IMG/VR virus record: IMGVR_UViG_3300013093_000017 | Span: 124,001 to 188,000 of that record | DNA: 64,000 bases | Reading direction: 5' to 3' (one strand) | Shown: positions 1 through 48,900 of the stretch, piece by piece | Numbering within the stretch: position 1 is the stretch's first letter | Layout of the letters: every line of letters begins with the position of its first letter | Position numbers and translations under genes: made by a program | Notes under the pieces: generated by a model | Databases searched by the model: none | Told to the model about the DNA's origin: nothing | The model's input: the letters and a program-made list of their open reading frames with translations, nothing else

Positions 1-978
1 TTATCCGAATTATTCCACCATAAAAAGAAACTAATAGAAGGCGGCAACGTATTTGCAGGCAAGACCACCTCTATTAAGCTCGAACACATTAAACCAACTT
101 TAGATGCGTACTTTGCAGAATTAAAACATCTGTTCCCAAAGAAAGCAGGCATATTTAACGAACAACATTTTGTTCCGCTCGGTTCAGTTGGTAAGAAAGC
201 AGTATCAGGTGACATTGATCTTGGTGTTAGTGCCAGTGAACTTGTTGATAAAGAAATGAGCGATGCCAGTATAGCCGAATGGGGTATTGATCCCAAAGAT
301 GTTGCAGCAGAAGCAGAAGCCTTGCAAAAACGTGCTAGAAGTTCTACTCCAGAACAATCACGCATGAAAGCATTTAATAAATGCCTAGTACGTTATATTA
401 ATGCACATGCCCCGACATTACACTGCGATGAAACAAAAGTAACCAACGGTAATCTATTTGGATTATTTCCGCAGATAGACGAACAAGGCAATCACGTGGG
501 CAGTGGTGTGCAAATTGATTGGATGATTGGAGATCTAAATTGGCTACGTTTCAGCTATCATTCAGCAGCATATCCAGAAGGGTCTAATGTTAAAGGTCTA
601 CACCGTACGCAATTAATGTTATCAGCGTTCCAAGTGGCAGGACTATCATTTAATCACGTTGATGGTGTTAAAGATAAAGCAACTGGAGAGATTATTGCTC
701 GGGATCCAGATCAAGCATTGACCATACTAGGACAACGTCTAGGATTTAAGATAACACAAGCAGATGCAGAAGATTATTATAAACTACATAATCTATTCAA
801 AGCAAAAATGCGCCCAGAAGAATATAGTGCATTGCTAAACATCTACTTTAAGATATTAGACAGTACTCGCGCAGATATTCCTGACGATTTACAAGACGAA
901 TGGCGCAAACGTCAATCGGCATTGGGCCTAACAGGTAAGTTCCTACCTGATAATTCAGCATTAAAGGTGAGACAATGA
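1..978 (+). CDS. Pol-beta-superfamily nucleotidyltransferase, 5'-truncated; probable head-packaged protein
   Basis: Frame 1 is open from base 1, upstream of the ORF-track start at 256: LSELFHHKKKLIEGGNVF...LGSVGKKAVSGDIDLG has the hGS...GDxD NTase motif; a candidate third Asp lies in VQIDWM. Confidence 0.65.
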   Translation, partial: LSELFHHKKKLIEGGNVFAGKTTSIKLEHIKPTLDAYFAELKHLFPKKAGIFNEQHFVPLGSVGKKAVSGDIDLGVSASELVDKEMSDASIAEWGIDPKDVAAEAEALQKRARSSTPEQSRMKAFNKCLVRYINAHAPTLHCDETKVTNGNLFGLFPQIDEQGNHVGSGVQIDWMIGDLNWLRFSYHSAAYPEGSNVKGLHRTQLMLSAFQVAGLSFNHVDGVKDKATGEIIARDPDQALTILGQRLGFKITQADAEDYYKLHNLFKAKMRPEEYSALLNIYFKILDSTRADIPDDLQDEWRKRQSALGLTGKFLPDNSALKVRQ

Positions 979-3926
979 GCGGAGTGGCCGGGGCAGATCG
1001 CATAAAGAGTCGTAACGATTTCAAGCAATTTCTTGCTTCCTATCAAAAACTGATTGCAAAGTTTCCTGGCTTTGTGTCAATGAACACCAGCGGAAGTTAT
1101 AACAGCGATCCAAGTAAAAATGATTTTGGTGATATTGATCTTATTGTACACATTAAGTCAGATAAAGATAAACCTACTGTAAAGAAAGAACTACAAGCGT
1201 TCTTACAAGCACAACCAGATACAGTTATTGTTCCGTTTACATCAGAGAAGCATGCCGGCAAACGTTCATACAATGCAGGTGAGCTAGTATCAGTTCGATA
1301 TCATGATGATCAATTAGGGTATTCGGCACAGATTGATAATATTGTTGCCCTAGACGAATCTGAAGCATCATTCAAGCAACAGTTCTTAGATTTGCCTGCT
1401 GAAAAGCAAGGACTAATTCTAGGCCTAGTTAAGATTGCTACAATTGAAACAGATCCTCAGAGGTTATTCAAAAGCCTGGGCATTACTGCACCGGTGCTTA
1501 CACAACCAAATGAAGAATACGAGTTTAATCTAAGCTCAGTTGAACTACAATTACGCAAGGTTACTTACAAACCAGGTACCTACGAACAAATTGGTCGCGA
1601 AGTTATTTGGACTAGTCGCAATTTTGACGATCTAAAGAAAGTATTATATCAATACAACCTAGATGCAGACTTTGATACACTGTTAGCACGTAGCAAACAG
1701 GTAATCAAAAATCCACGTAGCAATGCTCGTATGCAGGGTGTGTTTAGTAGTATGATTACAGTTAAATCAGGCGAGGTTGGCACTGCCAAAGGTGCCGGCA
1801 AAGAGGCTGCATTGGGCAAAATACAACAAACATTCCGCGAAGATGTATTCAAATGGACTGATTATGAAAATATAGACAACATGGATGATAGACTACATCT
1901 TGCCGAAACGTATTTTACAACTAATGATAATTTATTTGAATCCAATGAGTCCCATGCTACTAATTATTTCTTAAGTTTACGATCAGATGCTAATAATCCA
2001 GAAAAAAATAAAAAATATATTACAGTACTATTAGGATTAGTAGGTAATAGAATTATAAAAATGCAACCAATAGAATTTGGCACTTTTATAAAAAAACAAA
2101 ACGATATATTCTATATTCAATATGATAACGGTCAGATAGCAAAATTTCCGTCCGAATCAACTCAAACTAAATTAATAGCAAAAACATTTCTATTCGATAC
2201 TGTTCCTTCATATGATAAATTTAGGTCAGAAATTATGATGAAATTCAATACATCACTTCCTCCGGTTAATGAAAATCACAAGGACTACAGCTCAAAAATA
2301 AAAGAAAGCCGCTTGCTGAGAGAGATGATCAAACCACAGGCAAACACAGTGGTTTTTGCATTTGGTCGTTTTCAACCGCCTACAATTGGTCACGAGTTGC
2401 TCATTAATACAGTAAAGAACACCGCGGCAGGAAAGAGCGCAGATTACGTCATTTATGCTTCAAAAACACAAGATTCTAAGACAAATCCATTGTCAATTAA
2501 TCAAAAAATGCACTATTTAAACCTGGCATTTCCAGGTACTAACTTTGCTGCCGCTAATGCCGAAGTACGTACATTTATAGAGGCAGCAAAGATCCTTAAT
2601 AACCGATATAAGAATCTTATTATGGTAGCTGGTTCAGATCGTGTACAAGCATTTGAAGAAACACTAAACAAATACAATGGCACCGAATACAATTACGATA
2701 CAATCAAAGTAGTGTCAGCAGGTGAGCGTGATCCAGATTCAGATAGTGCAGCAGGTATGAGTGCAACTAAAATGCGCGAAGCCGCAGTAGCAGGTGATCT
2801 AAAACTGTTTATGAGTGGCCTCCCAAAAACTATCGGTACTAAGGATGCCGAACAGTTGATGAAAGATATACAACAAGGATTGGTTAAACAACCAAAGACT
2901 AATATGAAAGCAAAAGAAATTACTCCAGTGGCAGAAGGCAATGAAATGTCAGATGCAGCACAGGCTAGAGAATTGATCGGTCGTGCTATGTCCAATCGCA
3001 ATGAACGTCAAAAGTATTTTGACTTTATTAAATTCTTAATTAAAAAGAACGGCAAGGATTATGGTATTCAAGTACATCAACTTGCAACTAAGTTAGCCAA
3101 AGAAGGCCAAGATGGTATGGCAGGTGTAGGTATGGGCAACTATATTGTAGACAAAAGCACAACTAACGAACACATCGTTAAACACGGTAGTGGTTATAGA
3201 TTGGTTAGTAAAAAGACAGGTAAGAACTTAGGTGACTTTCCGACTCGTGCTGCCGCAGAAAAACACGAACGAGAAGTACAATACTTTAAACATGCCGGTG
3301 AAAGTGTAGAAACAGACGAAGCAGCAGCGTGGCAAAAATCGTCAGGTAAGAATAAGAACGGTGGCCTTAATAAAAAAGGAGTTGCCAGTTATCGCAGAGA
3401 ACATCCTGGTAGCAAACTAAAGACAGCAGTGACCAAAAAGCCTAGTGAATTAAAAGCAGGTAGTAAAGATGCTAAACGTCGCAAGAGTTTTTGCGCTCGT
3501 ATGAAAGGTATGAAGAAACATAACACTAGCTCTAAAACAGCACACGATCCAGATTCACGTATCAATAAATCACTGCGTAAATGGCACTGCGAAAGCATTG
3601 AAGAAATGGCACAGATGATTGAGAACGCAGAACGTTTCTTAGCCGAAGCCAAGGTCGAAGAAAAGTGGACTAAGAAATACAAAGACAGTATCAACTGTTC
3701 TAATCCTAAAGGCTTTAGTCAAAAGGCACATTGCGCAGGTAAAAAGAAAAACGAAGAAACAGAGATGGAAGAAGCTAAACAACGTTTAGATCCAAAGTGC
3801 TGGAAAGGTTATAAGAAACAAGGCACTAAGATGAAAGGCAACACTCGTGTAAACAACTGTGTGCCGGTAGACGAAAGCGTAGAAACTACTATAGCTAAAC
3901 TTATTAAACTATTAGAATCAAAATGA
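975..3926 (+). CDS. Multidomain protein: N-terminal Pol-beta NTase, AT-rich insert, cytidyltransferase-like (HIGH) domain and several small basic modules
   Basis: SGSY...FGDIDLIV (NTase); FAFGRFQPPTIGH, VAGSDR and GMSATKMR (T4-like phage cytidyltransferase family); C-terminal Lys-rich modules separated by Glu-rich linkers. Confidence 0.7.
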   Translation: MSGVAGADRIKSRNDFKQFLASYQKLIAKFPGFVSMNTSGSYNSDPSKNDFGDIDLIVHIKSDKDKPTVKKELQAFLQAQPDTVIVPFTSEKHAGKRSYNAGELVSVRYHDDQLGYSAQIDNIVALDESEASFKQQFLDLPAEKQGLILGLVKIATIETDPQRLFKSLGITAPVLTQPNEEYEFNLSSVELQLRKVTYKPGTYEQIGREVIWTSRNFDDLKKVLYQYNLDADFDTLLARSKQVIKNPRSNARMQGVFSSMITVKSGEVGTAKGAGKEAALGKIQQTFREDVFKWTDYENIDNMDDRLHLAETYFTTNDNLFESNESHATNYFLSLRSDANNPEKNKKYITVLLGLVGNRIIKMQPIEFGTFIKKQNDIFYIQYDNGQIAKFPSESTQTKLIAKTFLFDTVPSYDKFRSEIMMKFNTSLPPVNENHKDYSSKIKESRLLREMIKPQANTVVFAFGRFQPPTIGHELLINTVKNTAAGKSADYVIYASKTQDSKTNPLSINQKMHYLNLAFPGTNFAAANAEVRTFIEAAKILNNRYKNLIMVAGSDRVQAFEETLNKYNGTEYNYDTIKVVSAGERDPDSDSAAGMSATKMREAAVAGDLKLFMSGLPKTIGTKDAEQLMKDIQQGLVKQPKTNMKAKEITPVAEGNEMSDAAQARELIGRAMSNRNERQKYFDFIKFLIKKNGKDYGIQVHQLATKLAKEGQDGMAGVGMGNYIVDKSTTNEHIVKHGSGYRLVSKKTGKNLGDFPTRAAAEKHEREVQYFKHAGESVETDEAAAWQKSSGKNKNGGLNKKGVASYRREHPGSKLKTAVTKKPSELKAGSKDAKRRKSFCARMKGMKKHNTSSKTAHDPDSRINKSLRKWHCESIEEMAQMIENAERFLAEAKVEEKWTKKYKDSINCSNPKGFSQKAHCAGKKKNEETEMEEAKQRLDPKCWKGYKKQGTKMKGNTRVNNCVPVDESVETTIAKLIKLLESK

Positions 3927-4198
3927 AACAGTTCTACATTACCAAAGAAAATATAACACAAAATCATCCAGATGATTGCTATCTTGCTCCTGAGGATCCT
4001 ATCCAAGAATTAAAGATTGCTGCTATGATGGGTGGTCTTGGTGCACAGGCAAGGCTCGACGAATATAAAGCAAAGGTAGCCGAGACAAATAAGGTAAATA
4101 CTGGCAGTATCGACAAAGCCAAATATATGAAAGATAACAACATCAAGCCCGGCACGCCTGCCTGGTTTGAGCTATGGTTTGGCAGACAAGGAAAATAG
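3923..4198 (+). CDS. Hypothetical phage protein (IKPGTPAWFELWF)
   Basis: ATGA overlap with the upstream stop; part of a contiguous operon. Confidence 0.6.
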   Translation: MKQFYITKENITQNHPDDCYLAPEDPIQELKIAAMMGGLGAQARLDEYKAKVAETNKVNTGSIDKAKYMKDNNIKPGTPAWFELWFGRQGK

Positions 4199-4199
4199 A

Positions 4200-4565
4200 A
4201 TGAGAGCATACGAATTTATGAGAGAAGCCCGCGACTTTAAGGGCGGAAAAGGAATGAAATCAGATCAATCTGGCGCTATTCCAAACTCGCATGTTTATCC
4301 AGAATTAGACAATAGTTCAGGATATATGGCCTATAGATTTGGAATAGCCTTAGCTGGTATGCCTGATCAAAAGATGGATGTCGCTGGCCCAACTGGATTG
4401 AAACTAGTATCTATCGGATACACACCAGCAGATGAAGAAATCCTGCAAGCAGCAGCAGATTTAATCGGAACTCCGCGTGTTCGCTTAACTCCAAATGGTA
4501 GTACTGAATCACCAGGCACTAACTCTGCTAGCCCAGTTCCAGATAGGAAGAAATTAAAGAAATGA
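4200..4565 (+). CDS. Hypothetical protein, probable internal head protein
   Basis: The likely start is ATG at 4200 (MRAYEFMRE), resembling T4 capsid-targeting leaders of the MKTYQEFIAE type. Confidence 0.55.
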   Translation: MRAYEFMREARDFKGGKGMKSDQSGAIPNSHVYPELDNSSGYMAYRFGIALAGMPDQKMDVAGPTGLKLVSIGYTPADEEILQAAADLIGTPRVRLTPNGSTESPGTNSASPVPDRKKLKK

Positions 4566-5020
4566 AAATAAACGAAATCTTAGAAGCACAAGAACGTCCA
4601 TTGCCTAAAACTGATCTACGTGTAGGCGATCATGTTACAGCAGACACAAGCAAAGAACAATATCCAGGTGGTCATAAATCACGCACGGGCAAAGTAACCC
4701 GTGTTGGACAAACTGGTGTACACATTCAACCAGATGACGGTGGTGAGCGTGAATATCATCCTTACAAGATCGTAAAGAAAACTTCAGGGGTAGAAGAATC
4801 AGCAACAGCAGGTGCTACATCAAGCGGCTCTATTGCAACTGTGGTAAATCCGCAACTTAGTCCAGGTAAAGCACGCGGTAAGAAATCTTACACAGGCAGT
4901 CCAGGTCAAAGTGGTACTAAAGCACCACCGCAACCTAAACCGAAAGCACAAAAACCAACAGATAATGCATTGAATATGAAAGGTACTAGCATATTCGGTG
5001 GTCCAGCAATTAAACGATAA
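4562..5020 (+). CDS. Hypothetical protein with SH3/Tudor-like segment, probable internal head protein
   Basis: MKINEILE leader; LRVGDHV...TGKVTRVG beta-barrel-like segment; ESATAGATSSGSIA module. Confidence 0.55.
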   Translation: MKINEILEAQERPLPKTDLRVGDHVTADTSKEQYPGGHKSRTGKVTRVGQTGVHIQPDDGGEREYHPYKIVKKTSGVEESATAGATSSGSIATVVNPQLSPGKARGKKSYTGSPGQSGTKAPPQPKPKAQKPTDNALNMKGTSIFGGPAIKR

Positions 5021-5466: not shown

Positions 5467-8139
5467 ATGTCGTATGTAGATTCCATCTGGGATCGTGACA
5501 ATGATATTGTCAAGGTCGTCGAACGAGATCCAATCAAGGGTCGTATATTCCAACAATTTCCAGCACGCTATGTGTTCTATTATCCAGACGGTCGAGGAAA
5601 ATACACATCAATCTTTGGGGAACCATTGACCAAGGTTGTTAGTAAGAGTTGGAAAGAAAATGTTAAAGAACAAAAGATTCATTCAAGTCACAAACTGTAC
5701 GAGAGCGATATCAATCCTGTATTCCGTTGTTTAGAAGAAAATTATCTAGGTAAAGATGCTCCAAAACTAAATGTAGCATTTTGGGATATTGAGGTGGACT
5801 TTGATCCAGAACGTGGCTATGCTAGTCCAGACGATGCGTTTATGCCAATTACTGCTATTGCAGTACACCTACAATGGTTAGACACTCTAGTGTGTTTAGC
5901 TGTACCTCCTAAAACATTAACTATGGCAGAAGCTCAGGAACAGGTTAAAGATTTTCCAAATACTATCCTATTCGAAACAGAATACGAAATGTTGGATACC
6001 TTCTTAAATTTAATTGAAGATGCAGATGTGTTAAGTGGATGGAACAGTGAAGGCTTTGATATGCCCTACACAGTTAATCGCATTATTAAAACTCTGAGCA
6101 AAGAAGATACTCGTAGATTATGTCTATTCGATCAACTGCCAAAAAAACGTGAATACGAAAAATATGGGAAACAGGCCGTTACTTATGATCTAGTTGGCCG
6201 TGTTCATTTAGATAGTTTAGAATTATATCGCAAGTACACTTACGAAGAACGTCACAGTTATTCGTTGGATGCTATTGCTGAATATGAACTAGGCGAACGC
6301 AAAACACAATACGAAGGCACACTTGATCAACTATACAACAATGACTTTAAAAAGTTTATTGAATATAACCGTCAAGATACTGCCTTGTTAGATCGCTTAG
6401 ATAAGAAATTAAAATTCTTAGACCTTGCTAACACACTAGCACATGATTGTACAGTATTGCTACAAACAACTATGGGTGCTGTGGCTGTTACAGAACAGGC
6501 TATTATTAACGAGGCACATCATTTAGGAATGATTGTTCCAAGTCGTCCTCGAAGAGATGATTCAGTTGACACGCAGGCCGCAGGTGCTTATGTAGCATAT
6601 CCAAAAAAAGGTATTCACGATTGGATTGGTTCAATGGATATTAACAGCTTATATCCAAGTGCAATTCGTGCCCTAAACATGGGTCCAGAAACTATTATTG
6701 GTCAATTACGTCAAGACTATACCAAAGCAGAAATCGAAGCCAAGATGGCTAAAAATGGCGGCAAGTTCGCTATGGCGTGGGAAGGTAAGTTTGGCGCAAA
6801 TGAATATGAGTTTGTTATGGCCAAAGATAAAACTAACGAAATCATTATTGATTGGGAAGATGGGCACACTGATGTAATGAGTGGTGCTCAGATCTATGAG
6901 CTAGTATTTGAAAGTAATCAACCTTGGATGCTATCAGCAAACGGAACTATCTTTACCTACGAGAAAGAAGGTATTATTCCGGGATTATTAAAACGCTGGT
7001 ATGCTGAACGTAAAGACATGCAGAAAAAACTAAAGGAAGCTATCGATGTTGGTAACAAAATTGAAGAAGAGTATTGGGATAAACGACAACTTGTTAAGAA
7101 AATTAATCTTAATAGTCTGTATGGGGCTATTCTTAACGCTGGTTGCCGCTTCTTTGATAACCGTATTGGACAATCCACCACCCTTACTGGGCGACGAATC
7201 GCTAGGCATATGGCCGCTAAGATAAATGAGATTATCACAGGCGATTACGACCATGTAGGTAAAAGCATTATCTACGGTGATACTGATAGTGCGTACTTTA
7301 GCGCATACTTAACTTTAAAGAATGAAATCAATAAAGGTCAACTTACTTGGAATAAAGATACTGTTATTGATCTATATAATACAGTAGCAGACGAAGTAAA
7401 TGGTACATTTCCTCAATTGATGCTAGATGATTTCCATTGTCCTAAATCCAGAGGCGAAGTAATTAAAGCAGGGCGTGAAATTGTTGCCATCAAAGGATTG
7501 TTTATTACCAAGAAGCGTTATGCTGTATTGTATTACGACAAAGACGGTAATCGTTATGACGTAGACGGCAAGGTTGGCAAGATCAAAGCTATGGGTTTAG
7601 ATTTGAAGCGCAGTGATACTCCGGAGTTTATGCAGAACTTTTTGAGCGATGTATTAACCAAGGTGTTAAATGGTGCTGAAGAATCAGAAATTCTTGAGAT
7701 GATATCAGAGTTCCGTACCAAGTTTAAAGTGCGTCCAGGCTGGGAAAAAGGTAGCCCAAAACGTGCTAACAACATTGCTGCCTATCAAGCCAAAGAAGAA
7801 AAGGCAGGTAAGAGTAATATGCCCGGACACGTTCGAGCTAGTATCAATTGGAATACTTTGAAGCGCATGAATGGTGACAAATATTCTATGAACATTGTAG
7901 ATGGTATGAAGGTTATCGTTTGCAAGATGAAAGACAATCCACTCGGATATACCTCAATCGCATATCCAGTAGATGAACTGCGTTTACCTAAATGGTTCCA
8001 AGAATTACCATTTGATCACGCAGAGATGGAAGCTACTATTATTAACAACAAACTAGATAATCTTATTGGAGTATTGGAGATTGACCTTGTGTCAACCCAA
8101 AACAACAATACATTTTCTTCGTTATTTGATTTTGAATAA
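5467..8139 (+). CDS. Family B DNA polymerase (T4 gp43-like)
   Basis: Exo motifs DIE, GWNSEGFD and YNRQD; polymerase motifs DINSLYPS, KINLNSLYG and YGDTDS. Confidence 0.97.
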   Translation: MSYVDSIWDRDNDIVKVVERDPIKGRIFQQFPARYVFYYPDGRGKYTSIFGEPLTKVVSKSWKENVKEQKIHSSHKLYESDINPVFRCLEENYLGKDAPKLNVAFWDIEVDFDPERGYASPDDAFMPITAIAVHLQWLDTLVCLAVPPKTLTMAEAQEQVKDFPNTILFETEYEMLDTFLNLIEDADVLSGWNSEGFDMPYTVNRIIKTLSKEDTRRLCLFDQLPKKREYEKYGKQAVTYDLVGRVHLDSLELYRKYTYEERHSYSLDAIAEYELGERKTQYEGTLDQLYNNDFKKFIEYNRQDTALLDRLDKKLKFLDLANTLAHDCTVLLQTTMGAVAVTEQAIINEAHHLGMIVPSRPRRDDSVDTQAAGAYVAYPKKGIHDWIGSMDINSLYPSAIRALNMGPETIIGQLRQDYTKAEIEAKMAKNGGKFAMAWEGKFGANEYEFVMAKDKTNEIIIDWEDGHTDVMSGAQIYELVFESNQPWMLSANGTIFTYEKEGIIPGLLKRWYAERKDMQKKLKEAIDVGNKIEEEYWDKRQLVKKINLNSLYGAILNAGCRFFDNRIGQSTTLTGRRIARHMAAKINEIITGDYDHVGKSIIYGDTDSAYFSAYLTLKNEINKGQLTWNKDTVIDLYNTVADEVNGTFPQLMLDDFHCPKSRGEVIKAGREIVAIKGLFITKKRYAVLYYDKDGNRYDVDGKVGKIKAMGLDLKRSDTPEFMQNFLSDVLTKVLNGAEESEILEMISEFRTKFKVRPGWEKGSPKRANNIAAYQAKEEKAGKSNMPGHVRASINWNTLKRMNGDKYSMNIVDGMKVIVCKMKDNPLGYTSIAYPVDELRLPKWFQELPFDHAEMEATIINNKLDNLIGVLEIDLVSTQNNNTFSSLFDFE

Positions 8140-39314: not shown

Positions 39315-39971
39315 TTAACTTCCGTTAGTTAGACTTTGAATTCTAACTGTGTAATCTATCTGTATCATTCTGTTCAATGCTTTTTGTACAGGATGGAAAA
39401 TAACATGAGTTAGCAATGGGCCTGTATTAGCACCAGCTGAACTGTATCCTCGCAATCCTAACTCATCAAACACAAATGTACCGTCTTGGTTTACGCTGGT
39501 GTCAAACGCTGCTTGACCACTTGGTTCGCCAAAGTCCAATAAGCAAGTAACTAATACATCCGAATAAGGTGTACCAGGTACATGACGAACTTCCATAAAG
39601 TTCCTAGATGGGTCAACATCATACGGACTTTGACCATCTACTATTTTGTAATATTGTTGGTTGTATAAGGCTGCATTAGATCCAACAGTGTTTGGTGTCA
39701 AATATGTAATAATGCCAGTTGGATCAACTCTACTACCACCGTTGCCAAATGCCATTTCAGAAATAAATCCACCGTTGTTTGAGATGCTGTTAGCCAATGC
39801 TATTGAAAAGTTTTCATAGTGAATAGCATTACGCTTGTCTACGAATACTTCCTTAGTCTCAGGATCATGTATTTTGATGTGTCCTTGGATACGTACTGTT
39901 CCCATTTCGTTAGGTTTTTTTGTATTATTTTCCATAGTTTCTTTCATCTTTTCAGTTTTAGACTTGTCCAT
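39315..39971 (-). CDS. Virion structural protein
   Basis: Lies in the tail operon; FDELGL...LLTHVIFHPVQK motif. Confidence 0.65.
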   Translation of the reverse strand: MDKSKTEKMKETMENNTKKPNEMGTVRIQGHIKIHDPETKEVFVDKRNAIHYENFSIALANSISNNGGFISEMAFGNGGSRVDPTGIITYLTPNTVGSNAALYNQQYYKIVDGQSPYDVDPSRNFMEVRHVPGTPYSDVLVTCLLDFGEPSGQAAFDTSVNQDGTFVFDELGLRGYSSAGANTGPLLTHVIFHPVQKALNRMIQIDYTVRIQSLTNGS

Positions 39972-42900
39972 AGTGATATTTATCCGGAAGGGCAGCCTGT
40001 CTATCTCGCAAGAACGTAGCTACTGCGCCAGTATCGTTCAATAGAGATGTTGCGGTACTTGCGTACCAATCTTTAGCGGTTTGTTGTACAAGGGTGATTG
40101 CAGTACCTGTGTTTAATCTGCCTGCAGGCACATTTAATGTCAGAACATTATTTGTGCCGGACGATGTGATAGTAAATTCAGGTGGTAGATAATTTAATCC
40201 CTGATACACAAATCCGTTTACCGCAGATAAATCTAGCGAGTTAGTATATACCCATACTTGGTTTGTTGATGTAACCAAATAAGCATTACCTATCACAGTT
40301 GTATTAGGTAGCGCAGTTGAAGTAGAAATTGTTCCTACAATAGTAGCAGTTACATTGTCGTATAATACCGACATATCGTGAACATACATTCCATCTTTAC
40401 GTAGTGGTATACCACCTTGATATACGCGAACTTGGTGTACAGATGCAGTTGACGTATTGAATACTATGCCATTACCTTTGGTGTTGGTCATATTCTCAAT
40501 TACATAGGCAATATCTAATGGGCTTGGAACTACAGCAGTACTAACATTCACAGTTTCAGTATATGGCATTATTTGACGCACACCCTGATCTAATACCTCA
40601 GTACCTACTGGATAACCATCTCTTGCTCCGGTTCCTAATGTAGCACGTTTAAGTCTTGATAATGTATTGCCACTCATTGCCATATATTCAATACGTTCGC
40701 CAGCAATTAATATAACGCCTGGAGCATTTTTTGCTGGATTAGGCACTGATAAATCGCTTGCCTCATCTACCACAATTGTAGTAGAAGTAGTATATAACGG
40801 CTCAGCTAGATTTGTACTATTTGTTTCGCTTATGCGTTTGAATGTTGTACGATTTAATATATCTTTAAATTGACGATATGCTATCACTGTGTTATCTGAC
40901 ACATCAGTCATACTCATTACAACTATTGTATCAGTAGATTGAATTGGATAATTATCATCAACAACTACTGTTTTATTATCAGTATCGATATAATAATCAA
41001 GACCGTTAGTTAACGGTGTTCCGTTAATTGTTACCCATACATAATTGTCATTAAGTACCGCACGATTCATTGTGTATCTTCTTAATGTTCCTGATGTGAA
41101 TACTTCTGTTCTAATCATATCACTATCTTGATTTGTGTACGTTGTGACTTTAAGTATTCCGCCTTCTGGAATTGCAAGTCTGTTGGTATTCAATATAATT
41201 TGACCATTATCAAAATAGTACTGACTATAAACAGTATTAGTAATTGCAACCGCATCACCTGTTTTCAAGATGCCTGGACGGAATACAATTAATTTATTAG
41301 GTTGATCTAAAATAAAATCAGCACCATTTTGAATTTGTATTCCGTTGACAAATACCTGCAATGCGCCTAATGAAAATACGCCTGCTGGATAATTGCTGTT
41401 TGGATCAATTTCAAATACCGTTTGATTAGCTGCCGCAGAATAATATGCAGTGTTTGGTGGTATTAATCTAAGTTTATTCAATTCAACAATTGCTTGAGCA
41501 TTAATTGGTCCAATCACGCCAGGATACTGGGTAAGAGTATACGCAGTAGTAGCAGATGATGTAACAAATATTTGGTCTTTTACTTCACTGTAGCCTTTGT
41601 ATGCTGCTTCGAATACCCACACCTGTAATGTATTTGTACCTGTTAATCCCGAAACAGTAACACCTTTACCATTTAATTTATATTGGTCTGATGTTATTGG
41701 ATTACCATTTAATGTTACATATAGACTTCCAATATCTGCCAATGGTACTCCTACTGGGACTGTAATTGAAGATTTAGTTGATGTAGCATAATCGTAAGAC
41801 GAGTACGCTGCACCTCCAATTCCTACGTTAGTCACAGCAACTACTCCTGTTGAAGTTTGTGTAGATATTGTAATAGTATTATTATTGAAGTCAATAGTAT
41901 AATCGGTACCGTAGTTTAATATACCGCGATTATATGATACCATTAATGATGATGTATTTGCTGGTAACATAGACAACGAAACAGTAGTAGAAGTTGTTGT
42001 TGTGCTTACTAAGAATGTATTCTGTGAGATCATAGGTGATCCACTCGGCACTCGGGTGTAAACACTAATACCAACACTTTCAACTACTTCGCCTGGTACT
42101 AATTCTTCAGGACCGTGGCTTACATTTGGCGATAAGAATTGATCTCCATCAACAATTAGATCTTCTGGATTTAAACCAGTTGCCATTGTATAGGCTAGAT
42201 CACCACCGTCGATAATAGTATCAAGTGATGCTTCACCATTGCCACCATCGTCCCATGCTGCTTCAGTAAATGGTAACATGTCCCAGTTTGAAGTGTAGGC
42301 AAATGGCAATGTTTGAATTTGTGTACCTGGATAATCTACTCCTGTCATTACTTGAGCAGGATCTGCTCCTGGCATACCATCCGTCGGTGCATAGTAATCT
42401 TGAATACGATCAGCAGCATGGTATAAATTAATATTTTTGTTGTAGGTAATATCTAATATCTGTCCTTTATTAGGAACAGATGTTAGTACCAATGTAGAAT
42501 ATAATTTATGATATCCGTTAGATACTTGTGTATAAGTTACTATATCATAATCTAAAGCAAAAATCTTAATACCATCTAATGTGATTTCAATTTCTGATTT
42601 TTTGTTTTCAGCTGCCCAAGATAGAGGGAATTGATAAGTGCTGCCATCACAGAAGAACTGATCTGCGGCCTGCTTATTACCAATCTCTCTAAGACCAGTA
42701 ACACGGTCAAATCGTATATCAATTTTATTAGTACGCACTTTTCCGTTGGCTAATTGAGCATAGGCACGAGCTTGTACAACACCAGTCGACCCGCCGCCAG
42801 TTAATACCACAGTAGGGGTTTGTGTATATCCACTGCCGGGATTGGTTACCTCAATTTCAATTACCTTGCCTAATGATATATAAGCAATTGCAGTAGCAGG

Positions 42901-45900
42901 GTCTGTGATTGTATCTCCTGCTGCTGGAATAATCTGTACATTAGGTACTGATGTATATGTTCCGCCACCGTCGGCTACAATGATGCTACCAACTGTGTAC
43001 TTGTAGTTATCGGCCCATCCCTTACGTGGATATACATTAAGAGAAGCATCACCTAATTCAATAGGAACAAATGTATCTGTAATATTATCGTATATTGCAG
43101 GTAGGTCGAAGTCAGTTGTATAACTTTGTGTTGGTTCTACAACATCATATACTACTTGGAAGTTACGTATTTTAGTATGGTAAGGTTTAACTTCATTTAG
43201 ATAATCTTCATAGTATTCACTATTTTGGAATTTAAATACCGAACGTTGATCCAGCGGACCTGCTAGATTACTTACATTTATAAACGCAGTTTTGAATGCC
43301 CAGTCTAAGAATATTTGTTCGCTCATAGCATAGCGTACTGCTTTAAAGAAGAATTTATTCCAATAGACTTTTAATGGTCCAACGAAGATATCTTCTTTGA
43401 TTGCCAGTAATACGTTTTCTAATTCTGATTCTGCACTTTGGTCATATAATGTTTGATCAAATGTATATAGGTAGTCAAAGTTGTATGTTGAATCTGTAGT
43501 ATTCCATAAAGATTCTTTAAATTGTATTGTACCTTTTTCGCTGTAGACTAAATCATAAGCATCATCAAATGTTCCATTTGAATCAACCTTGGCTAGAATA
43601 ATATATCTACCATTGCCCTGATTATTAACTTTAACATAATCACCAGTAGATGGAGATATTGTAGCTAATAGGTAAGGTTGGTCAACAGTTGTTACCAAAG
43701 GTTTCAATGGATCAAACGAGGTAGCTTGCCAGTCAACATAATCCCAAAATAATGTAGTATCGTAATCTTGGGTATGTGATCTATTCCATTGGTTATTATA
43801 CCATTGATATTCTGCCCATCTATTTCCGCTGGTCGCATCAACTGTTACTATTACAGTATACGGTCTTACCACCAGTATTGGTGTTTCTGTGTAGCCGTAT
43901 CCAGAATTAACTATTGTAGTGCTAACTACTCTACCTACAGAATCAATCTCAGTAGAAATAACAATACCGCTGGTGTCATTCAACACAGCGATAGTTGGCG
44001 CAATTAGGTATCCATATCCAGGATCTTCTATGCTTACACCTGTTACTCTACCATCAGTAATTTGACAAGATACTGCTGCTTGTTTAAAGTAGATAGTTGT
44101 AATTTCGTACAATGCCTGTTCATTATCAACTTGTTGATCATATAATCCAGTTTCTACATCAGGTATAGGATCTTTAGAATTTAGATTTGTAAAGTTAATA
44201 ACATCAGTTACAATATTTTGAGATAATACTGTGTTGGTGTAATCAATTGCGTTACGTAGCGCACCAATTCTATCTTTAAATAATCCTTGGCGAGGACGAA
44301 TGCTTACACCATATTTGATGCGATCTGATAAACTAGGATCAGGTACAGGATTGCCAAGACTATCACGCCCTAATAAACTATCCATTAATTTCTTTTCAAG
44401 CAATGCGTTAGGCATACTGTTAACATCGCCGTCTGCTAATAACATCCATTCGGTGTGTTGATTAATATCATTATCGATATCATCTTCGGCTATGTTAAGA
44501 TAGATATTATTTTGTGATAATGTTGAAGTAACATTAGTAACCGCAATACTATCAGCAGCTAATACAGAAATGTATTTCATTCCGTATGCTGAAGGATTGT
44601 AAATTAAATTAGCAACATCATTTGCCGAAATCTTACGGAAATCTGCTGCAGGAATTGTTACTTTATTTTTTACCCAATAGAAGTAAACATTAGTAGTACC
44701 ACCTGTTGTGGCATTATAATATTGTTTAACGCTGATTACTGAATTGTCTGCGTATTTAGGTTGACCGCTAATTCCTTTAGCAAGGCCGTCTACAGTATCA
44801 GCTAGTGAGCTCCACTGACTCGGTAAGTACTCGCTGCTTACCCATTCGTAAACATCAATACTTGCTCCTGGGAATAAAGTACCCCAAGAGTTTTTTCTAT
44901 ATTCAAGATCACTTTGCTCGTACCAGGTGTATTTTACAGTGCTTAGATCCCACCATAGTTCTCCTAGGTGATCTTCAATCCAGCTGGTATTTGTATCTAC
45001 TACTACCCCTTGAACCCCAATACTGTATACCGCAGGGTCAAAGGCTGTTTTGTATCGTACTTCTTGATCAGCAATACCTACAATACGACCTTTTGCTGGA
45101 TCAACTATATCTAGATAATCAAGAACCTGCTGACTTAATGTGTCAATAGTGATAGCACGTTTAACTTTAGATAGATCAACAAGGTCATCTTGTGATCTAT
45201 AAACATTCCAACTGTTAATAGTTACGTCTTTTTTAGCAAATACATACGCACTACCGATTGTGCTATTTGAAACAAATTTGCCAGGAGTTCCTACTAATAC
45301 TGTGCCGTTGTTAACTGCAACACTATTACCGTATTGACTGTTGGCCACAGGGGAGCCTGTTGCAGGATCTATGTTAAGAACATTGTCATCAAATAATTCT
45401 TCAGCATAGATAAATTTATCATTGTATCTATTGAATACATAGACAGCACCTGATCCTTTAGCGGTATCACCAAAATGGCAAGTTCCATTATCTAAAGTAG
45501 TTGCACCTTTATCAAATGTTATATCAATAAATTTATTATCACCGTGACCAGTTACCGTTAATAATTGTCCTAGATCATCGATTGCCAATGCTTGACCAAA
45601 ATTAAGATTAACATCAGTAGATGGATTATCTAATGTTTGATTTAATACATATTGTGTAGCAGTATTTTGTTTATAGATGAAAACCTTGCCTACATTAGTT
45701 TTGCCATCATTAACACTAGTAGATGCCACAAATAGGTAAGTGCCATCATCTGACATTAATACTGTCGATCCAAATCTGTCACCAGTTTTACACACGCTAG
45801 GTGCTGATATAAATTGTGCTTGTACAAGATTAGTAGTTCCGCTGGTAGCAGTTGAGTAAACATAAACACCGCCGATATTACCGTTTGTTCCTGGAGCAGA

Positions 45901-48900
45901 AATTGCTACCATTGTACCGTCTGCGCTACCGCAAATTGAAGCACCTACTCTATCACCTTGTGTATTTGATGGAGTTATTGTAATTGGGGAAGATTGTACT
46001 ATCGTTGTATCAGTTGACACAATCGACACATTATAAGCATATATCGCACCAGTTGAGGTATTTTGACCAGGTGCGCCAACTACTAATAATTTATTAGTTG
46101 AAGTAGTTTTGCTTACATATAATCCGGCACCGTATTCGCCAGGGTGAACGTTTGGATTTGTTATCACTGCACCAGTGCGGTGGATTTCACTTTTTGTAGT
46201 TCTGTTAATTCCAGAAATCTTTATTAAATCAACAGCAGGGGCGCCGGCAAATATAGAATCTGTTTCGATGTCATATATTAATGTTGCGCCAAAGTTTGTT
46301 GCTACAGATTTGCTGACTGTATTATTAACGATAGTATCATCAATACCATAATTTGTAATAGGAGTTAATATGTTATCTGAATATCCGTACACAAATATGC
46401 GACCATATCCGTACGATGCACCGTAATATCCTGTCGGAGCAGAAATTGCCACAATATTTGCAGTGTCTTGAGTAGCAACACGAGATCCAAATCCTTGACC
46501 AGTTATTGATAGACTAGGAAGTGTTTCGGTAGATGTGCTATAATTGCTAGCTTTTTCATATACTGCCCATTTGCCAGAATTATCACTGTCAACCCAAACT
46601 AAATCACCGTTGTTAAATGATATTGTTTTTTCTAGTTCAGCAATATTATCAAATTGTGCAGCACGCACGCTAACAAATTTAAACATCAATGCCTGCACAG
46701 TTGAAGGATTCACTGAGGCTAATGTAGTTGATATTGTAAATGTTGTCAATGACGGAATAGTTTTAATTACATAAACTCCGTCTGACCCGTTGTCTAATCC
46801 GTGAATAGATACCACATCACCCACTGATAAATTATGGAATATATCAGTTGTAAATGTTAATTCTGACGATGGAATTGTTACAGCAGAATCGACTACTTTT
46901 GGTTTTTGAATAGTATAGCGATACACATCCCATTCACCGTCATTGCGGAATCCTAACCAAATTGTATTGCCATCTTGGATGTTTCCATTGTTAGCAATAT
47001 CAAGTAAACTGTTTGTATTATAAGCAGTAGCAGTTACATCATCAGTACGAACATATCCTGCCACAGGCATTATAATGTTGTTGTCGGCATAGGTAGATGG
47101 TGTTGTAGAAAACGCAGTGTCCGAAGTGTATGTATCACTTTCCATGGTTAAATCAGTAGGAACAATATATGATATTACATCATTTGGTAATACTGGCGCT
47201 GTATCCACAAATTTAATAATCTGTGAATTTTCGCGGAAGTCTGCTTCACGTAGAGGAAACTCTAATTCATTATAAGAAACAAAATTACCATAATTACCAA
47301 CACGGAATGCCCACTCTTCTTTATATTCAATTTGCCCTTGTAGGTTATGAATACTTGCTTTAGCTAATTTAGTAATAGCATTTTGTGTGCCTTTTTCTCG
47401 AATAAATCCTTGATAGAATTTATATTGTGCAATCGGATTAACAAAGATATTATCTAGATAAGTACGTGGTGTATAGCCAATCAAATGTTGTGCCATACGT
47501 TGCTGAGCAACATCAAAGTTATCAATATCTAAACTATAGAAATCTTCAAACTGATTAATTTTATAATCAAAGTTTGGTAGTAATTGTGCTACTGGTTTAG
47601 ATCCTAGTAAATTCCAGCTGTTGAAATCAAAAGATGGTGCACCAGCAATATTAACATTAGCTGAATAGTAATTACCTACATACTTAACAATATCAGCAAC
47701 TTGATAGTCAGTATACTGTGCCCAATCTGAAATCTGTGCATCATCGTAAACAAAGCCCGGACTTAGGAATTCTCCGTTCCAATCAGCAGTTCTAAATCCT
47801 GTCAATTTAATACGACTTTGACGGTATCCTGTTTCAATGTCATATATAATATCATTAAACATACTTTTATTATTCATTACAATTGCATGTTCTTTTTGTA
47901 CAAGATTTAATCTAGCAAAGAATATTCCATCTGTTGTATTCTTAGTCTTAATAGTACATATACCACCTTCGCGGCTTAATGAAAAATTAGCTGCTGGAAA
48001 TACCTGTCCAGTGGCTTTGATTAAACTATATTCATAGAAACTGTTAAGAACATTGTCAACTACAGCATCTGTAAATTGATACTTAATAACATCTGCAAAA
48101 GGACTTAAAGTGATTACTGAACCGTCTGCCCAGTTTTGTGTAGACCAATATAGAAATTCTTTTCCAGTGAAATTCCAATCAATGACTTGATTTAGATCAG
48201 CATTGTATTCATCAAATATAAATCCCTGTGACATTAGCCACTGACCATATCCCATTATTAAATCATATACCTGTTGAATAGTACTATATTGTGTGCCGTA
48301 TGGTACTATTGTTTCTGCCGGATCGTACTGTTTAGTAACTAGAACCGATGCTCCGCCTACTGTAGACAGTTGTTTAATTGCGGCATAATATGTTGAAGTA
48401 AATGTTGCTCCAGAATTATGACTGCTGATTACTCTATAATAAACATTGCTATAGAATACAACCTGTCCTGCTTGATAGAATGAATTAGCAGTCCAAACTA
48501 AGAATGTTTCTGATTTGCCACCAACTGTGATCGCACTACCATTTGCCTGATGCAAAGGTTGATTAATAGTAAAATACGGATAGCGTTTATCATATCCCTT
48601 AACTGCAAAATAACCGTTCTTTTTCTCTACAATAATTCCAGATATTGCAGCAGATTTAACAGGGGTACTTACATTGAAATGCAAGGTGTAATCTTCGTTA
48701 GGTAGTAATACTCCAGGATTTGCTGTGTTAGGACTGATAGAATCAATTGTGATTTCTAATTTATCTTTACTTAAGAATCCGCCTGCTTTGTAAAATAAAT
48801 TAAGATTAACTGATGCTAGATCATTCTTAAGAGTGGTTAGATAATTTGAATTACGTTGACGACCATTTTCAATTAGCCAAACACTGTATCCCGATGCTAG

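Follow-up and report, generated by a model that had tools for sequence, protein, structure and literature searches.

Predicted head-packaged nucleotidyltransferases, including a probable polyprotein, in a large T4-like phage

[quoted passage not shown] The T4 CTS is MKTYQEFIAE, in which positions 4 and 7 have been experimentally defined as important for targeting, and positions 8 and 10 for processing. In phiKZ, SPN3US and 201phi2-1, many head-internal enzymes (e.g., the virion RNA polymerase) are processed after Glu at a short motif by a gp21-related protease, with several sites per propeptide. Among cyanomyoviruses, virion proteomic evidence has been reported for a ‘cytidylyltransferase’ family (T4-GC190; S-CREM2 gp154, P-SSM7 gp191) and for the DUF6321 family T4-GC119. 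Two further points of comparison are African swine fever virus (ASFV) Pol X, a minimal family X DNA polymerase of 174 aa from a virus that packages its repair enzymes in the virion, and the HIGH-signature nucleotidyltransferases (NMNAT/NadD, PPAT, GCT, TmcAL), which carry (T/H)xGH and SxTxxR motifs.

Here we examined a 64,000-nucleotide stretch of IMG/VR virus record IMGVR_UViG_3300013093_000017 (positions 124,001 to 188,000; henceforth the window), in which two consecutive genes encode nucleotide-transferring enzymes (Table 1). A previous sequence-only reading had proposed that these genes encode two Pol-beta nucleotidyltransferases and a HIGH-type enzyme, built as a polyprotein that is cleaved after Glu, packaged in the head and injected, possibly to NMPylate host targets, repair RNA ends or restore NAD against host defences. 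We found that what it had observed in the sequence is real, while its interpretation is supported only in part.

Table 1 Features of the locus; coordinates refer to the window
Position (strand)	Feature	Residues	Motifs and signals
1..978 (+)	ORF1	327 aa; true ATG 6 nt upstream of the window
1..39 (+)	ORF1 leader, predicted capsid-targeting propeptide	3-15 of MLLSELFHHKKKLIE (first two codons upstream of the window)	Ends in L-I-E15; predicted cleavage before G16
40..978 (+)	Mature ORF1, family-X-like nucleotidyltransferase (palm, thumb and C-terminal helices)		GS at nt 181-186; D73/D75 at 211-219; D175 at 517-519
975..3926 (+)	ORF2	983 aa
975..1841 (+)	ORF2 N-module, second family-X-like nucleotidyltransferase	1-289	GS at nt 1092-1097; D53/D55 at 1131-1139; D121 at 1335-1337; ends with TFRE289
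1842..2324 (+)	ORF2 M-module, unknown fold	290-450	Ends with CTS-like stretch ...SRLLRE450
2325..2936 (+)	ORF2 HIGH-motif nucleotidyltransferase	451-654	TIGH (470-473) at nt 2382-2393; SATKMR (596-601) at nt 2760-2777
2937..3320 (+)	ORF2 helical region of the PHROG 3041 ‘cytidyltransferase’ family, plus EHIVKHGSGY module	655-782	Ends ...ETDE782
3321..3662 (+)	ORF2 DUF6321 basic module	783-896	Net charge of 771-875 is +17
3663..3773 (+)	ORF2 KWTKKYKDSINC...HCAGKKK module	897-933	Preceded by KVEE896
3774..3926 (+)	ORF2 RLDPKCWKGY...NNCVP module plus stop codon	934-983	Preceded by EMEE933
4200..4565 (+)	Small ORF, candidate internal protein	121 aa from the ATG at 4200	CTS-like leader MRAYEFMRE, then A
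4562..5020 (+)	Small ORF	152 aa	CTS-like leader MKINEILE, then A; ATAGATSSG stretch

Domain content and predicted folds

The start of ORF2 overlaps the stop of ORF1 in an ATGA. Both proteins carry the GS...GDID motif (G63 S64 ... G72 D73 I D75 in ORF1 and G40 S41 ... G52 D53 I D55 in ORF2), and these residues, together with a third Asp (D175 and D121, respectively), are invariant in family alignments of 58 and 60 members. The sequence-only reading had named the lack of a Pol-beta fold with aligned Asp residues as grounds for its own rejection; AlphaFold2 models of ORF1 (pLDDT 89.8) and of the ORF2 N-module (pLDDT 92.6) both gave a Pol-beta palm plus thumb. Specifically, the top 9 structural matches (VIA) of ORF1 were all family X polymerases with Z 8.0-9.3, including ASFV Pol X with 166 of 176 residues aligned, and the top 8 matches of the N-module were likewise all family X polymerases with Z 10.6-11.9 and 163-182 residues aligned. 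Foldseek matched ORF1 to Pol beta (E 1e-5) and the N-module to Pol lambda (E 4e-6). The family X matches aligned over 160-198 residues spanning both the palm and the C-terminal (thumb/nascent base-pair) subdomain, while other nucleotidyltransferases aligned over only about 100 palm residues. The structural neighbours point more specifically to family X than had been supposed. This resemblance is by fold only (Z 8-12, 8-17% identity): of 60 ORF2-N members, 11 hit PF01909 weakly and 8 hit PF14792 weakly (best E 0.027), while the ORF1 family had no hit to the family X models (PF14792/PF14791). Neither protein contains the 8-kDa dRP-lyase or helix-hairpin-helix subdomain, as the N-module starts about 10 residues before the first palm helix and ORF1 has only a 15-residue leader; ASFV Pol X also lacks both.

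In 80 related viral loci, ORF1 was always found directly upstream of the ORF2 N-module, and the two were fused in 10; prediction of a complex between them gave no verdict. Given that two paralogous-looking enzymes are always paired, that the genome carries 24 tRNAs and a tmRNA, and that no class II CCA enzyme was found, one could suppose a split CC-adding/A-adding tRNA repair pair. We consider this very unlikely, as all 24 tRNA genes encode their own CCA, CCA-adding enzymes were not among the top 50 structural matches, and the thumb subdomain is of the family X type.

The cytidylyltransferase-like domain of ORF2 is also real: PF01467 scored 21.7-24.6 bits against a cut-off of 21 (24.6 bits for the domain alone), 25 of 26 family members matched the same model, and PHROG 3041 and 395 gave E-values of 1e-65 and 3e-43, respectively, with PHROG 3041 spanning residues 420-737. 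The domain carries both signature motifs and is 36-39% identical to S-CREM2 gp154 and P-SSM7 gp191. In the 80 loci the HIGH-type domain was fused to the N-module, encoded separately or absent. An alternative in which the proteins are packaged but serve NAD+ supply or counter-defence would make this domain an NMNAT that rebuilds NAD+ on entry, with the Pol-beta-fold enzymes nucleotidylating host proteins or small molecules rather than nucleic acids. Indeed, homologues are annotated as NMNAT/NadR-like, and the pattern SxTxxR...G...LP resembles NadD/NMNAT. However, the match to TIGR00482 was weak (13.6 bits against a cut-off of 112), no Nampt/NadV (PF04095) was found in the 230 kb of the contig searched (which is about 65% complete), the best solved-structure sequence hit was a TmcAL-family protein (MJ0951, E only 0.0035) and not an NMNAT, and the two-subdomain family X architecture fits the Pol-beta-fold enzymes better than protein or small-molecule nucleotidyltransferases do. 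We thus regard this alternative as unlikely.

Of the four small basic modules listed in the sequence-only reading, three recur elsewhere as portable units. The AAAWQK... module is DUF6321 (PF19846, E 3e-18) and is 60% identical to P-SSM7 gp194. The KWTKKYKDSINC... module appeared in 11 different protein contexts and the KQRLDPKCWKGY... module (RLDPKCWKGY...NNCVP) in 6, where it recurs at the C-termini of the proteins, and it matches the virion-detected S-CREM2 gp160. By contrast, the EHIVKHGSGY module was found only in this virus among the sampled loci, and the M-module only in this virus and in one other protein among the 80 loci, with no usable Pfam or Atlas match.

Leaders, junctions and putative cleavage sites

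The cleavage argument had rested on seven Glu-ending linkers in ORF2 (TFRE, PVNE, PVAE, LAKE, TTNE, KVEE and EMEE). All seven are present, but none has L/I at P3, and the number of (L/I)xE motifs in ORF2 is exactly what chance predicts (8 against 8.0 +/- 2.5), meaning that the argument as given was weak even though its conclusion gains better support from other evidence. Two of these linkers (TFRE and KVEE) have comparative support, one (EMEE) has weak support, and four (PVNE, PVAE, LAKE and TTNE) have no comparative backing.

Comparison between relatives revealed a more consistent pattern. All 53 leaders or extensions in the ORF1 family end in Glu at P1, with Leu or Ile at P3 in 49 of 53 (L 28, I 21, V 3, T 1), their length varies from 9 to 28 aa, and 25 orthologues begin with Met directly followed by GG at exactly that point. 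Many leaders are 9-10-residue look-alikes of the T4 CTS; for example, MKSFVEFITE matches it at the experimentally defined positions. In the ORF1 model, residues 5-16 have pLDDT below 50. At the ORF1-N fusion junctions, SG is preceded by LTE, MTE or LGE where unfused genes have Met-SG, and ‘TFxE’ is conserved at the end of the N-module. In the HIGH-type family, LxE is conserved 6-8 residues before strand 1 in fused relatives, and CTS-like leaders occur on free-standing ones. DUF6321 homologues are preceded by (L/I/V)xE, with one free-standing form starting MKFRELLSE. All eleven contexts of the KWTKKYKDSINC... module have h-x-E (where h is hydrophobic) immediately before it, two of them N-terminal after the 9-aa leaders MRANEFLTE and MKILDLINE, whereas the C-terminal RLDPKCWKGY...NNCVP module has a Glu 0-4 residues upstream. 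Overall, ORF1, ORF2-N, the HIGH-type enzyme, DUF6321 and the WSxKYKxSINC module are each preceded by h-x-E exactly at their conserved N-terminus whenever something lies upstream, while free-standing orthologues carry 9-10-residue T4-CTS-like leaders or are leaderless.

The neighbouring gp43, d91, d91b and up139 families, used as negative controls, have no such leaders. By contrast, the N-termini of 16 distinct homologues of the 121-aa ORF follow MRAxEF(I/V)xE, with paralogues in several loci; the 152-aa ORF weakly matches the Phage_ProQ_C_like domain, and its ATAGATSSG stretch resembles the mature N-terminus of this phage’s major capsid protein. Genome-wide, the CTS-like motif was enriched at start-proximal Met (9/389 against 6/1015, p=0.008). 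The same contig encodes a gp21-family (Peptidase S77) prohead protease (PF03420, 94 bits) and a gp23-type capsid protein (PF07068, 266 bits), and these head genes show YLRE9 in the protease, MDAFNQLVE in the scaffold and KYLGE41, followed by A, in the capsid protein.

Virion evidence comes from homologues only. S-CREM2 gp154 is a virion protein by mass spectrometry and starts MKNFSSFLTE; gp156, a Pol-beta-superfamily nucleotidyltransferase next to it, is also virion-detected. T4-GC190 and T4-GC119 are both marked as having proteomic data, and their members P-SSM7 gp191 and gp194 start MKKFSAFLTE and MKTYSQFIEE, respectively. The authors of the cyanophage study themselves warn, however, that abundant soluble proteins may co-purify with virions.

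These data can also be explained without packaging: the proteins may be ordinary cytoplasmic early or middle enzymes, with ORF2 a multi-domain fusion that works uncleaved, the h-x-E segments N-terminal caps or linkers of the domains, and the leaders unrelated to capsid targeting. In agreement with this, modules occur fused, split or leaderless in relatives; in 25 of 78 loci, and in the cultured Flavobacterium phage immuto, both family-X-like genes are leaderless, so the enzymes also work without CTS-directed packaging. The genes sit beside replication and chaperone genes (ClpB-like, DnaJ, gp43) and not in the head module, TATAAATA is not enriched genome-wide, and conserved h-x-E could in part be structural. 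ORF2 itself has no N-terminal leader (Met directly before SGVAG), and would need internal CTS-like segments or binding to ORF1 in order to be packaged, whereas the T4 experiments addressed only N-terminal CTS. Nevertheless, we consider this alternative unlikely, as leaders of variable length and sequence end in Glu, with L/I at P3 in nearly all cases, exactly where leaderless orthologues start, the same rule holds for five unrelated modules, the leader is disordered in the model, leaders closely resemble the T4 CTS, and homologous modules have virion proteomic evidence.

An inferred operon of ejection proteins

We propose that the region is an operon of T4-type internal head (‘ejection’) proteins, built as variable fusions. 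What the analysis shows, by structure prediction, is that the two family-X-like enzymes have complete two-metal catalytic triads and a palm-plus-thumb architecture like that of ASFV Pol X; the cargo rule is inferred from comparison, packaging and processing from analogy with T4 IPI-III and Alt, and the enzymatic activities, including any template-directed synthesis, are inference alone. In this view, each cargo module (a 131-aa protein just upstream of the window, the two family-X-like enzymes, the HIGH-motif nucleotidyltransferase, DUF6321 and two small Cys-containing basic modules) is preceded by a short capsid-targeting or processing peptide ending in h-x-E. During head assembly the leader would dock the protein into the scaffolding core, and the gp21-family protease would then cut after the Glu, with predicted sites between E15 and G16 in ORF1 and between E450 and M451 and E896 and K897 in ORF2. 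Sites between E289 and D290, E782 and A783, and E933 and A934 are less certain, and some have poor P3 residues (F at E289, T at E782). The freed enzymes and basic peptides would stay with the packaged DNA and enter the cell with it. Given strong comparative support but no proteome or cleavage data for this phage, we put the probability of head packaging and proteolytic processing at roughly 0.55.

As for function, the two family-X-like enzymes would most likely work as an obligate pair, adding nucleotides to 3'-OH ends of nucleic acid at the very start of infection (e.g., filling gaps in or tailing the incoming genome), although we hold this 3'-end activity to be doubtful on present evidence. 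The HIGH-type enzyme, recurrently fused to the second of them, would probably supply or consume an adenylylated cofactor or substrate (NMNAT/NadD/TmcAL-like branch). More tentatively, a widespread group of large aquatic T4-like phages may inject, together with the genome, a two-enzyme family-X-like polymerase machine plus an adenylyltransferase, delivered as a polyprotein that the prohead protease cuts at internal CTS-like junctions. These would be the first family-X-type ejection proteins in phages, acting on the incoming DNA (gap filling, end tailing or chemical marking) or on host RNA before any phage gene is expressed.

Internal or ejection proteins are the first phage products to act in the cell, with examples including restriction inhibitors, an ADP-ribosyltransferase and virion RNA polymerases. 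If the enzymes described here are delivered this way, they would add a new enzymatic class to the injected arsenal, and would also explain why ‘cytidylyltransferase’ keeps turning up in cyanophage virion proteomes. The analysis assigns two large families of hypothetical proteins (more than 1,800 hits for ORF1 and 532 for ORF2-N among the 8,000 candidates scored) to a predicted fold and an inferred cellular route. The junction rule (h-x-E exactly before the conserved mature N-terminus) is a simple and testable predictor of head-packaged cargo in uncultured T4-like phages, and the CTS-like leaders could also be useful for protein packaging.

Relation to known virus systems

The locus shares with the T4 internal proteins a short N-terminal propeptide with hydrophobic residues at about positions 4 and 7 and (L/I)xE at its end (in ORF1 and its family; in ORF2 only at internal junctions), a gp21-family protease in the genome, cargo that includes basic small proteins and an enzyme (as with Alt), and variable cargo genes outside the head module. 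It differs in that the predicted cargo is nucleotidyltransferases, modules are strung into putative polyproteins with internal CTS-like junctions, and many orthologues have lost the leader. Compared with ASFV Pol X, the phage proteins have the same palm plus C-terminal subdomain (163-166 of 176 residues aligned, Z 8.9-10.6), but no Pfam family X match above threshold, about 100 extra residues, and an obligate pairing. The HIGH-type domain shares the motifs and PF01467 match of its class, but reaches no equivalog model. The cyanomyovirus T4-GC190 and T4-GC119 proteins are separate genes with CTS-like N-termini, whereas here the corresponding modules are fused behind a family-X-like module, and the cyanophages lack the ORF1 and ORF2-N families. 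Finally, phiKZ, SPN3US and 201phi2-1 use an S/A-x-E motif and long propeptides and have a different capsid lineage, whereas here the motif and leaders are of the T4 type.

Genomic setting of the cluster

The two genes lie on a 229,675-bp IMG/VR viral contig (the window is bases 124001-188000 of it) that is about 65% complete, and the same locus is found in a 259-kb record (locus L007). The contig is T4-like: it encodes a gp21-family prohead protease (PF03420, 94 bits; contig positions 202954-203586), a gp23-type capsid protein and a family B DNA polymerase. A near-identity DNA search of cultured phages found no match, meaning that no cultured phage is close at the DNA level. ORF2 overlaps the stop codon of ORF1 in an ATGA arrangement and has its own GGTGA ribosome-binding site. 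The features considered here are listed in the table.

Features of the cluster, the contig and related loci. Positions are those of the window unless prefixed (G000:C1, contig of this phage; L001, L003 and L087, related loci).
Feature	Position	Size	Remark
ORF1	runs off the 5' end of the window by two codons	327 aa in full	family-X-like, predicted
ORF2	975-3926	983 aa	multi-domain
ORF2, HIGH-signature nucleotidyltransferase	residues 451-654		TIGH and SATKMR
ORF2, DUF6321	residues 783-875
ORF2, small Cys-containing basic modules	residues 897-933 and 934-983		recur in other phage proteins
131-aa gene heading the cluster	G000:C1:123600-123995; L003:1100-1495	131 aa	just upstream of the window
Small gene with MRAxEFIxE-type leader	4200-4565		mechanical ORF call starts at a TTG at 4167; family alignment points to the ATG at 4200
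Capsid-like stretch: 152-aa CTS-bearing protein, an 81-aa relative and the major capsid protein	4562-5020 and G000:C1:204717-205892 (outside the window)	152 aa; 81 aa
Family B DNA polymerase	5467-8139
Open reading frame followed by further ORFs of 583-1,138 aa on the minus strand	39958-52770 (minus strand)	4,270 aa	presumably giant tail or fibre proteins
One tmRNA and 24 tRNA genes in one array	G000:C1:24515-24845 and 72039-80674 (outside the window)		all 24 tRNA genes encode a 3' CCA
ClpA/ClpB-type double AAA+ chaperone, DnaJ and peptide deformylase	L003:2-598 and related loci		conserved neighbours upstream of the cluster in many related phages
S-CREM2 gp156	L087:4013-4726		Pol-beta-superfamily nucleotidyltransferase
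Flavobacterium phage immuto gene 182	L001:6001-8724		annotated as NMNAT/NadR

Predicted folds and domain content of the two proteins

Neither ORF1 nor residues 1-295 of ORF2 (the ORF2 N-module, or ORF2-N) matched Pfam above threshold, and sequence and profile searches of the PDB with ORF1, ORF2 and the further queries A1 and A2 found nothing significant. Both families are nevertheless large: ORF1 had 1,817 hits among the 8,000 candidates scored and ORF2-N had 532, all of them viral or metagenomic and none carrying a name. The invariant residues were G63, S64, D73, D75 and D175 in 58 ORF1 sequences, and G40, S41, D53, D55 and D121 in 60 ORF2-N sequences, which is the hG[GS]...DhD...hDh signature of the Pol-beta superfamily. 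Comparison of ORF1 with ORF2-N by BLASTP and by profile-profile alignment gave only a weak alignment around GS..DID (E 0.12, probability 0.5%), so that a paralogous relationship between the two is not shown by sequence.

AlphaFold2 models built on these alignments were confident (pLDDT 89.8 for ORF1 and 92.6 for ORF2-N), and Foldseek against the PDB returned Pol beta, lambda and mu at E 4e-6 to 1e-5. In an exhaustive VIA search, family X polymerases filled the top of both lists. For ORF1 the top nine hits were all family X (Z 8.0-9.3; 160-198 residues aligned, including 166 of 176 residues of ASFV Pol X), while for ORF2-N the top eight were all family X (Z 10.6-11.9; 163-182 residues aligned, including 163 of 176 of ASFV Pol X). 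These matches cover palm plus thumb, whereas TUTases, poly(A) polymerases, CD-NTases and MenT aligned only over the roughly 100-residue palm. Both proteins lack the 8-kDa and HhH subdomains, as does ASFV Pol X. Weak, sub-threshold hits of ORF2-N relatives to PF01909 (11 of 60) and PF14792 (8 of 60) agree with this, and BFVD shows further uncharacterised phage relatives and giant-virus Pol X. A Pol-beta fold with aligned Asp residues had been set in advance as a condition that the sequence-only reading had to satisfy, and the models satisfy it. The resemblance is more specific than that reading supposed, as these are minimal family-X-like enzymes, but membership of family X is not established because sequence models fail and activity is inferred from fold alone. 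A literature search for phage PolX, DUF6321 or DUF6267 found nothing relevant.

In the remainder of ORF2, the HIGH-signature nucleotidyltransferase is supported by PF01467, which matched 25 of 26 relatives, and by matches to PHROG 3041 and 395. No equivalog model was reached, the best solved relative by sequence was a TmcAL-family protein at E 0.0035, and no particular substrate is indicated. For residues 290-450, Atlas and Pfam searches with the M-module (residues 296-450) gave no credible match. We also looked for NAD-salvage and base-excision-repair partners: no NadV, DenV, NAD-dependent ligase or class II CCA-adding enzyme was found in the 230 kb of this incomplete genome.

In 80 related viral loci an ORF1 homologue always lies directly upstream of an ORF2-N homologue, and in 10 of these loci the two are one protein of 612-633 aa. 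The HIGH domain is fused to N, encoded by the next gene, encoded further away, or absent, while DUF6321 and the C-terminal modules are usually in other genes. The cultured Flavobacterium phage immuto has the same pair; its gene 182 is in fact a PolX-like N-module fused to a different, divergent HIGH-type domain (GGFKPPHLAH), with further regions carrying HEMIHH and HEIEH metalloprotease-like motifs. The two PolX-like enzymes are thus an obligate pair, recurrently linked to a HIGH-NTase.

Leader peptides and module junctions

The observation we regard as decisive concerns the module boundaries. The ORF1 family has a short N-terminal peptide, which is disordered in the model (pLDDT <50 for residues 5-16). 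Across the 80 loci, 25 ORF1-type genes begin M↓GG(N/H)(V/I)F (the arrow marks the junction), while 53 carry either a leader (9-28 residues, in 46 loci) or a whole extra domain (62-298 residues, in 7 loci, in at least two of which, L009 and L015, it is the upstream 131-aa gene fused in). In all 53 the residue before GG is Glu; P3 is Leu in 28, Ile in 21, Val in 3 and Thr in 1, and P2 is variable. Ten-residue leaders read MKSFVEFITE, MITFKEFITE and MKTFAQYLAE, which can be compared with the T4 capsid-targeting sequence (CTS), MKTYQEFIAE. In T4, residues 4 and 7 govern targeting and residues 8 and 10 govern processing.

The same rule holds for the other modules. For the N-module, 65 genes start M↓SG, all 10 ORF1-N fusions join as LTE, MTE or LGE↓SG, and five genes have mini-leaders (MIDE↓, MINE↓ or MYITE↓). 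In Flavobacterium phage immuto both genes of the pair, 181 and 182, are leaderless (M↓GGNVF and M↓SGVAGG). For the HIGH-NTase module, fused forms carry ...FRSLLE↓ 6-8 residues before the first strand, whereas free-standing forms start MKKYRQLVE↓ or MKLIELFE↓, or are leaderless; in this ORF2 the equivalent is RLLRE450↓M. Homologues of the DUF6321 module have ...ELLSE↓, IDE↓ or VSE↓ before (A/D)WQK, and one free-standing form starts MKFRELLSE↓. For the WSxKYKxSINC module, all eleven contexts have h-x-E just before it, and two are N-terminal, after MRANEFLTE↓ and MKILDLINE↓.

Neighbouring small genes also carry such leaders across their families. The gene at 4200 starts MRAYEFMRE↓, and its MRAxEFIxE-leader family occurs as two or three tandem paralogues in several relatives (loci L012, L013 and L017), reminiscent of the fast-evolving T4 ip genes. 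The gene at 4562 starts MKINEILE↓; this 152-aa CTS-bearing protein, and an 81-aa relative that starts MKIADLLE↓AATAGATSSGS, contain a near copy of the first residues of the mature major capsid protein (KYLGE41↓AATAGATSSGN), so that it looks like a small protein mimicking the capsid protein's cleavage site and N-arm. The upstream 131-aa gene starts MKLYEFF, its family N-terminus being M(K/L)LxEFFG, and in some relatives it is fused to ORF1 through an (L/V/I)xE↓GGN junction. A candidate late promoter, TATAAATA, lies 18 nt upstream of its ATG and is followed by GGAG; however, the octamer is under-represented genome-wide and absent upstream of the capsid gene, so it does not fix the timing of expression. 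By contrast, adjacent families such as the polymerase and the neighbouring families d91, d91b and up139 do not carry such leaders. Genome-wide, the motif is enriched at start-proximal Met (9/389 against 6/1015, p=0.008). The phage's own head proteins show matching sites, namely YLRE9 in the protease (compare LIE-9 in T4 gp21), MDAFNQLVE↓ in the scaffold and KYLGE41↓A in the capsid protein.

The sequence-only reading had argued for cleavage from seven Glu-ending linkers and the (L/I)xE specificity of T4 gp21. This premise was weak, as none of the seven linkers has L/I at P3 and (L/I)xE motifs are not enriched in either ORF, yet the conclusion nevertheless finds support. Of the linkers, KVEE896↓ has comparative backing, as does TFRE289↓ (a conserved TFxE, followed in relatives by a CTS-like 10-mer); EMEE933↓ has weak backing, and PVNE, PVAE, LAKE and TTNE have none. 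The best-supported sites, ORF1 E15↓G16 and ORF2 E450↓M451, had been missed.

Virion evidence from relatives and interpretation

Experimental support comes from relatives. The S-CREM2 cytidylyltransferase gp154 is 36% identical to ORF2 residues 456-638 and starts MKNFSSFLTE. It was detected in CsCl-purified virions, and the authors of that study note that cytidylyltransferases are frequently detected in cyanophage virion proteomes, although they also caution about co-purification. In Sullivan et al. 2010, T4-GC190 (cytidylyltransferase) and T4-GC119 are both marked as having proteomic data; the P-SSM7 members are 39% and 60% identical to the ORF2 modules, and start MKKFSAFLTE and MKTYSQFIEE. 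The cyanophage genes upstream of the P-SSM7 cytidylyltransferase (gp189 and gp190) are not relatives of ORF1 or ORF2-N. S-CREM2 gp156, a 'hypothetical protein' two genes downstream of gp154, is also virion-detected and is a Pol-beta-superfamily NTase (PF01909, 21.4 bits), suggesting that the pairing of a HIGH-NTase with a Pol-beta NTase may be a general feature of packaged cargo in marine T4-like phages. S-CREM2 gp160, also virion-detected, matches the last ORF2 module.

Taken together, the observation made from the sequence alone is confirmed. Its interpretation, in which the enzymes are packaged in the head and cut apart, is partly supported and has been sharpened. Packaging and cleavage are inferred by comparison, as nothing is shown for this phage itself, and function is inferred from fold only. 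ORF2 has no N-terminal leader, meaning that its targeting would need internal CTS-like segments or association with ORF1; a complex prediction for ORF1 with ORF2-N scored 0.00, which we do not take as evidence either way. In addition, a third of the lineages are leaderless for both enzymes, so the enzymes also function without this route, much as T4 Alt compares with ModA and ModB. With regard to activity, we favour action on nucleic-acid 3' ends at entry, by analogy with the virion-packaged repair enzymes of ASFV, while NAD-related or protein-directed activities are not excluded. In comparison with known systems, the region is most likely a T4-type internal-protein operon, a kind of system already known, which differs in that its cargo is a PolX-like enzyme pair, a HIGH-NTase and basic modules, arranged as protease-cleavable fusions.
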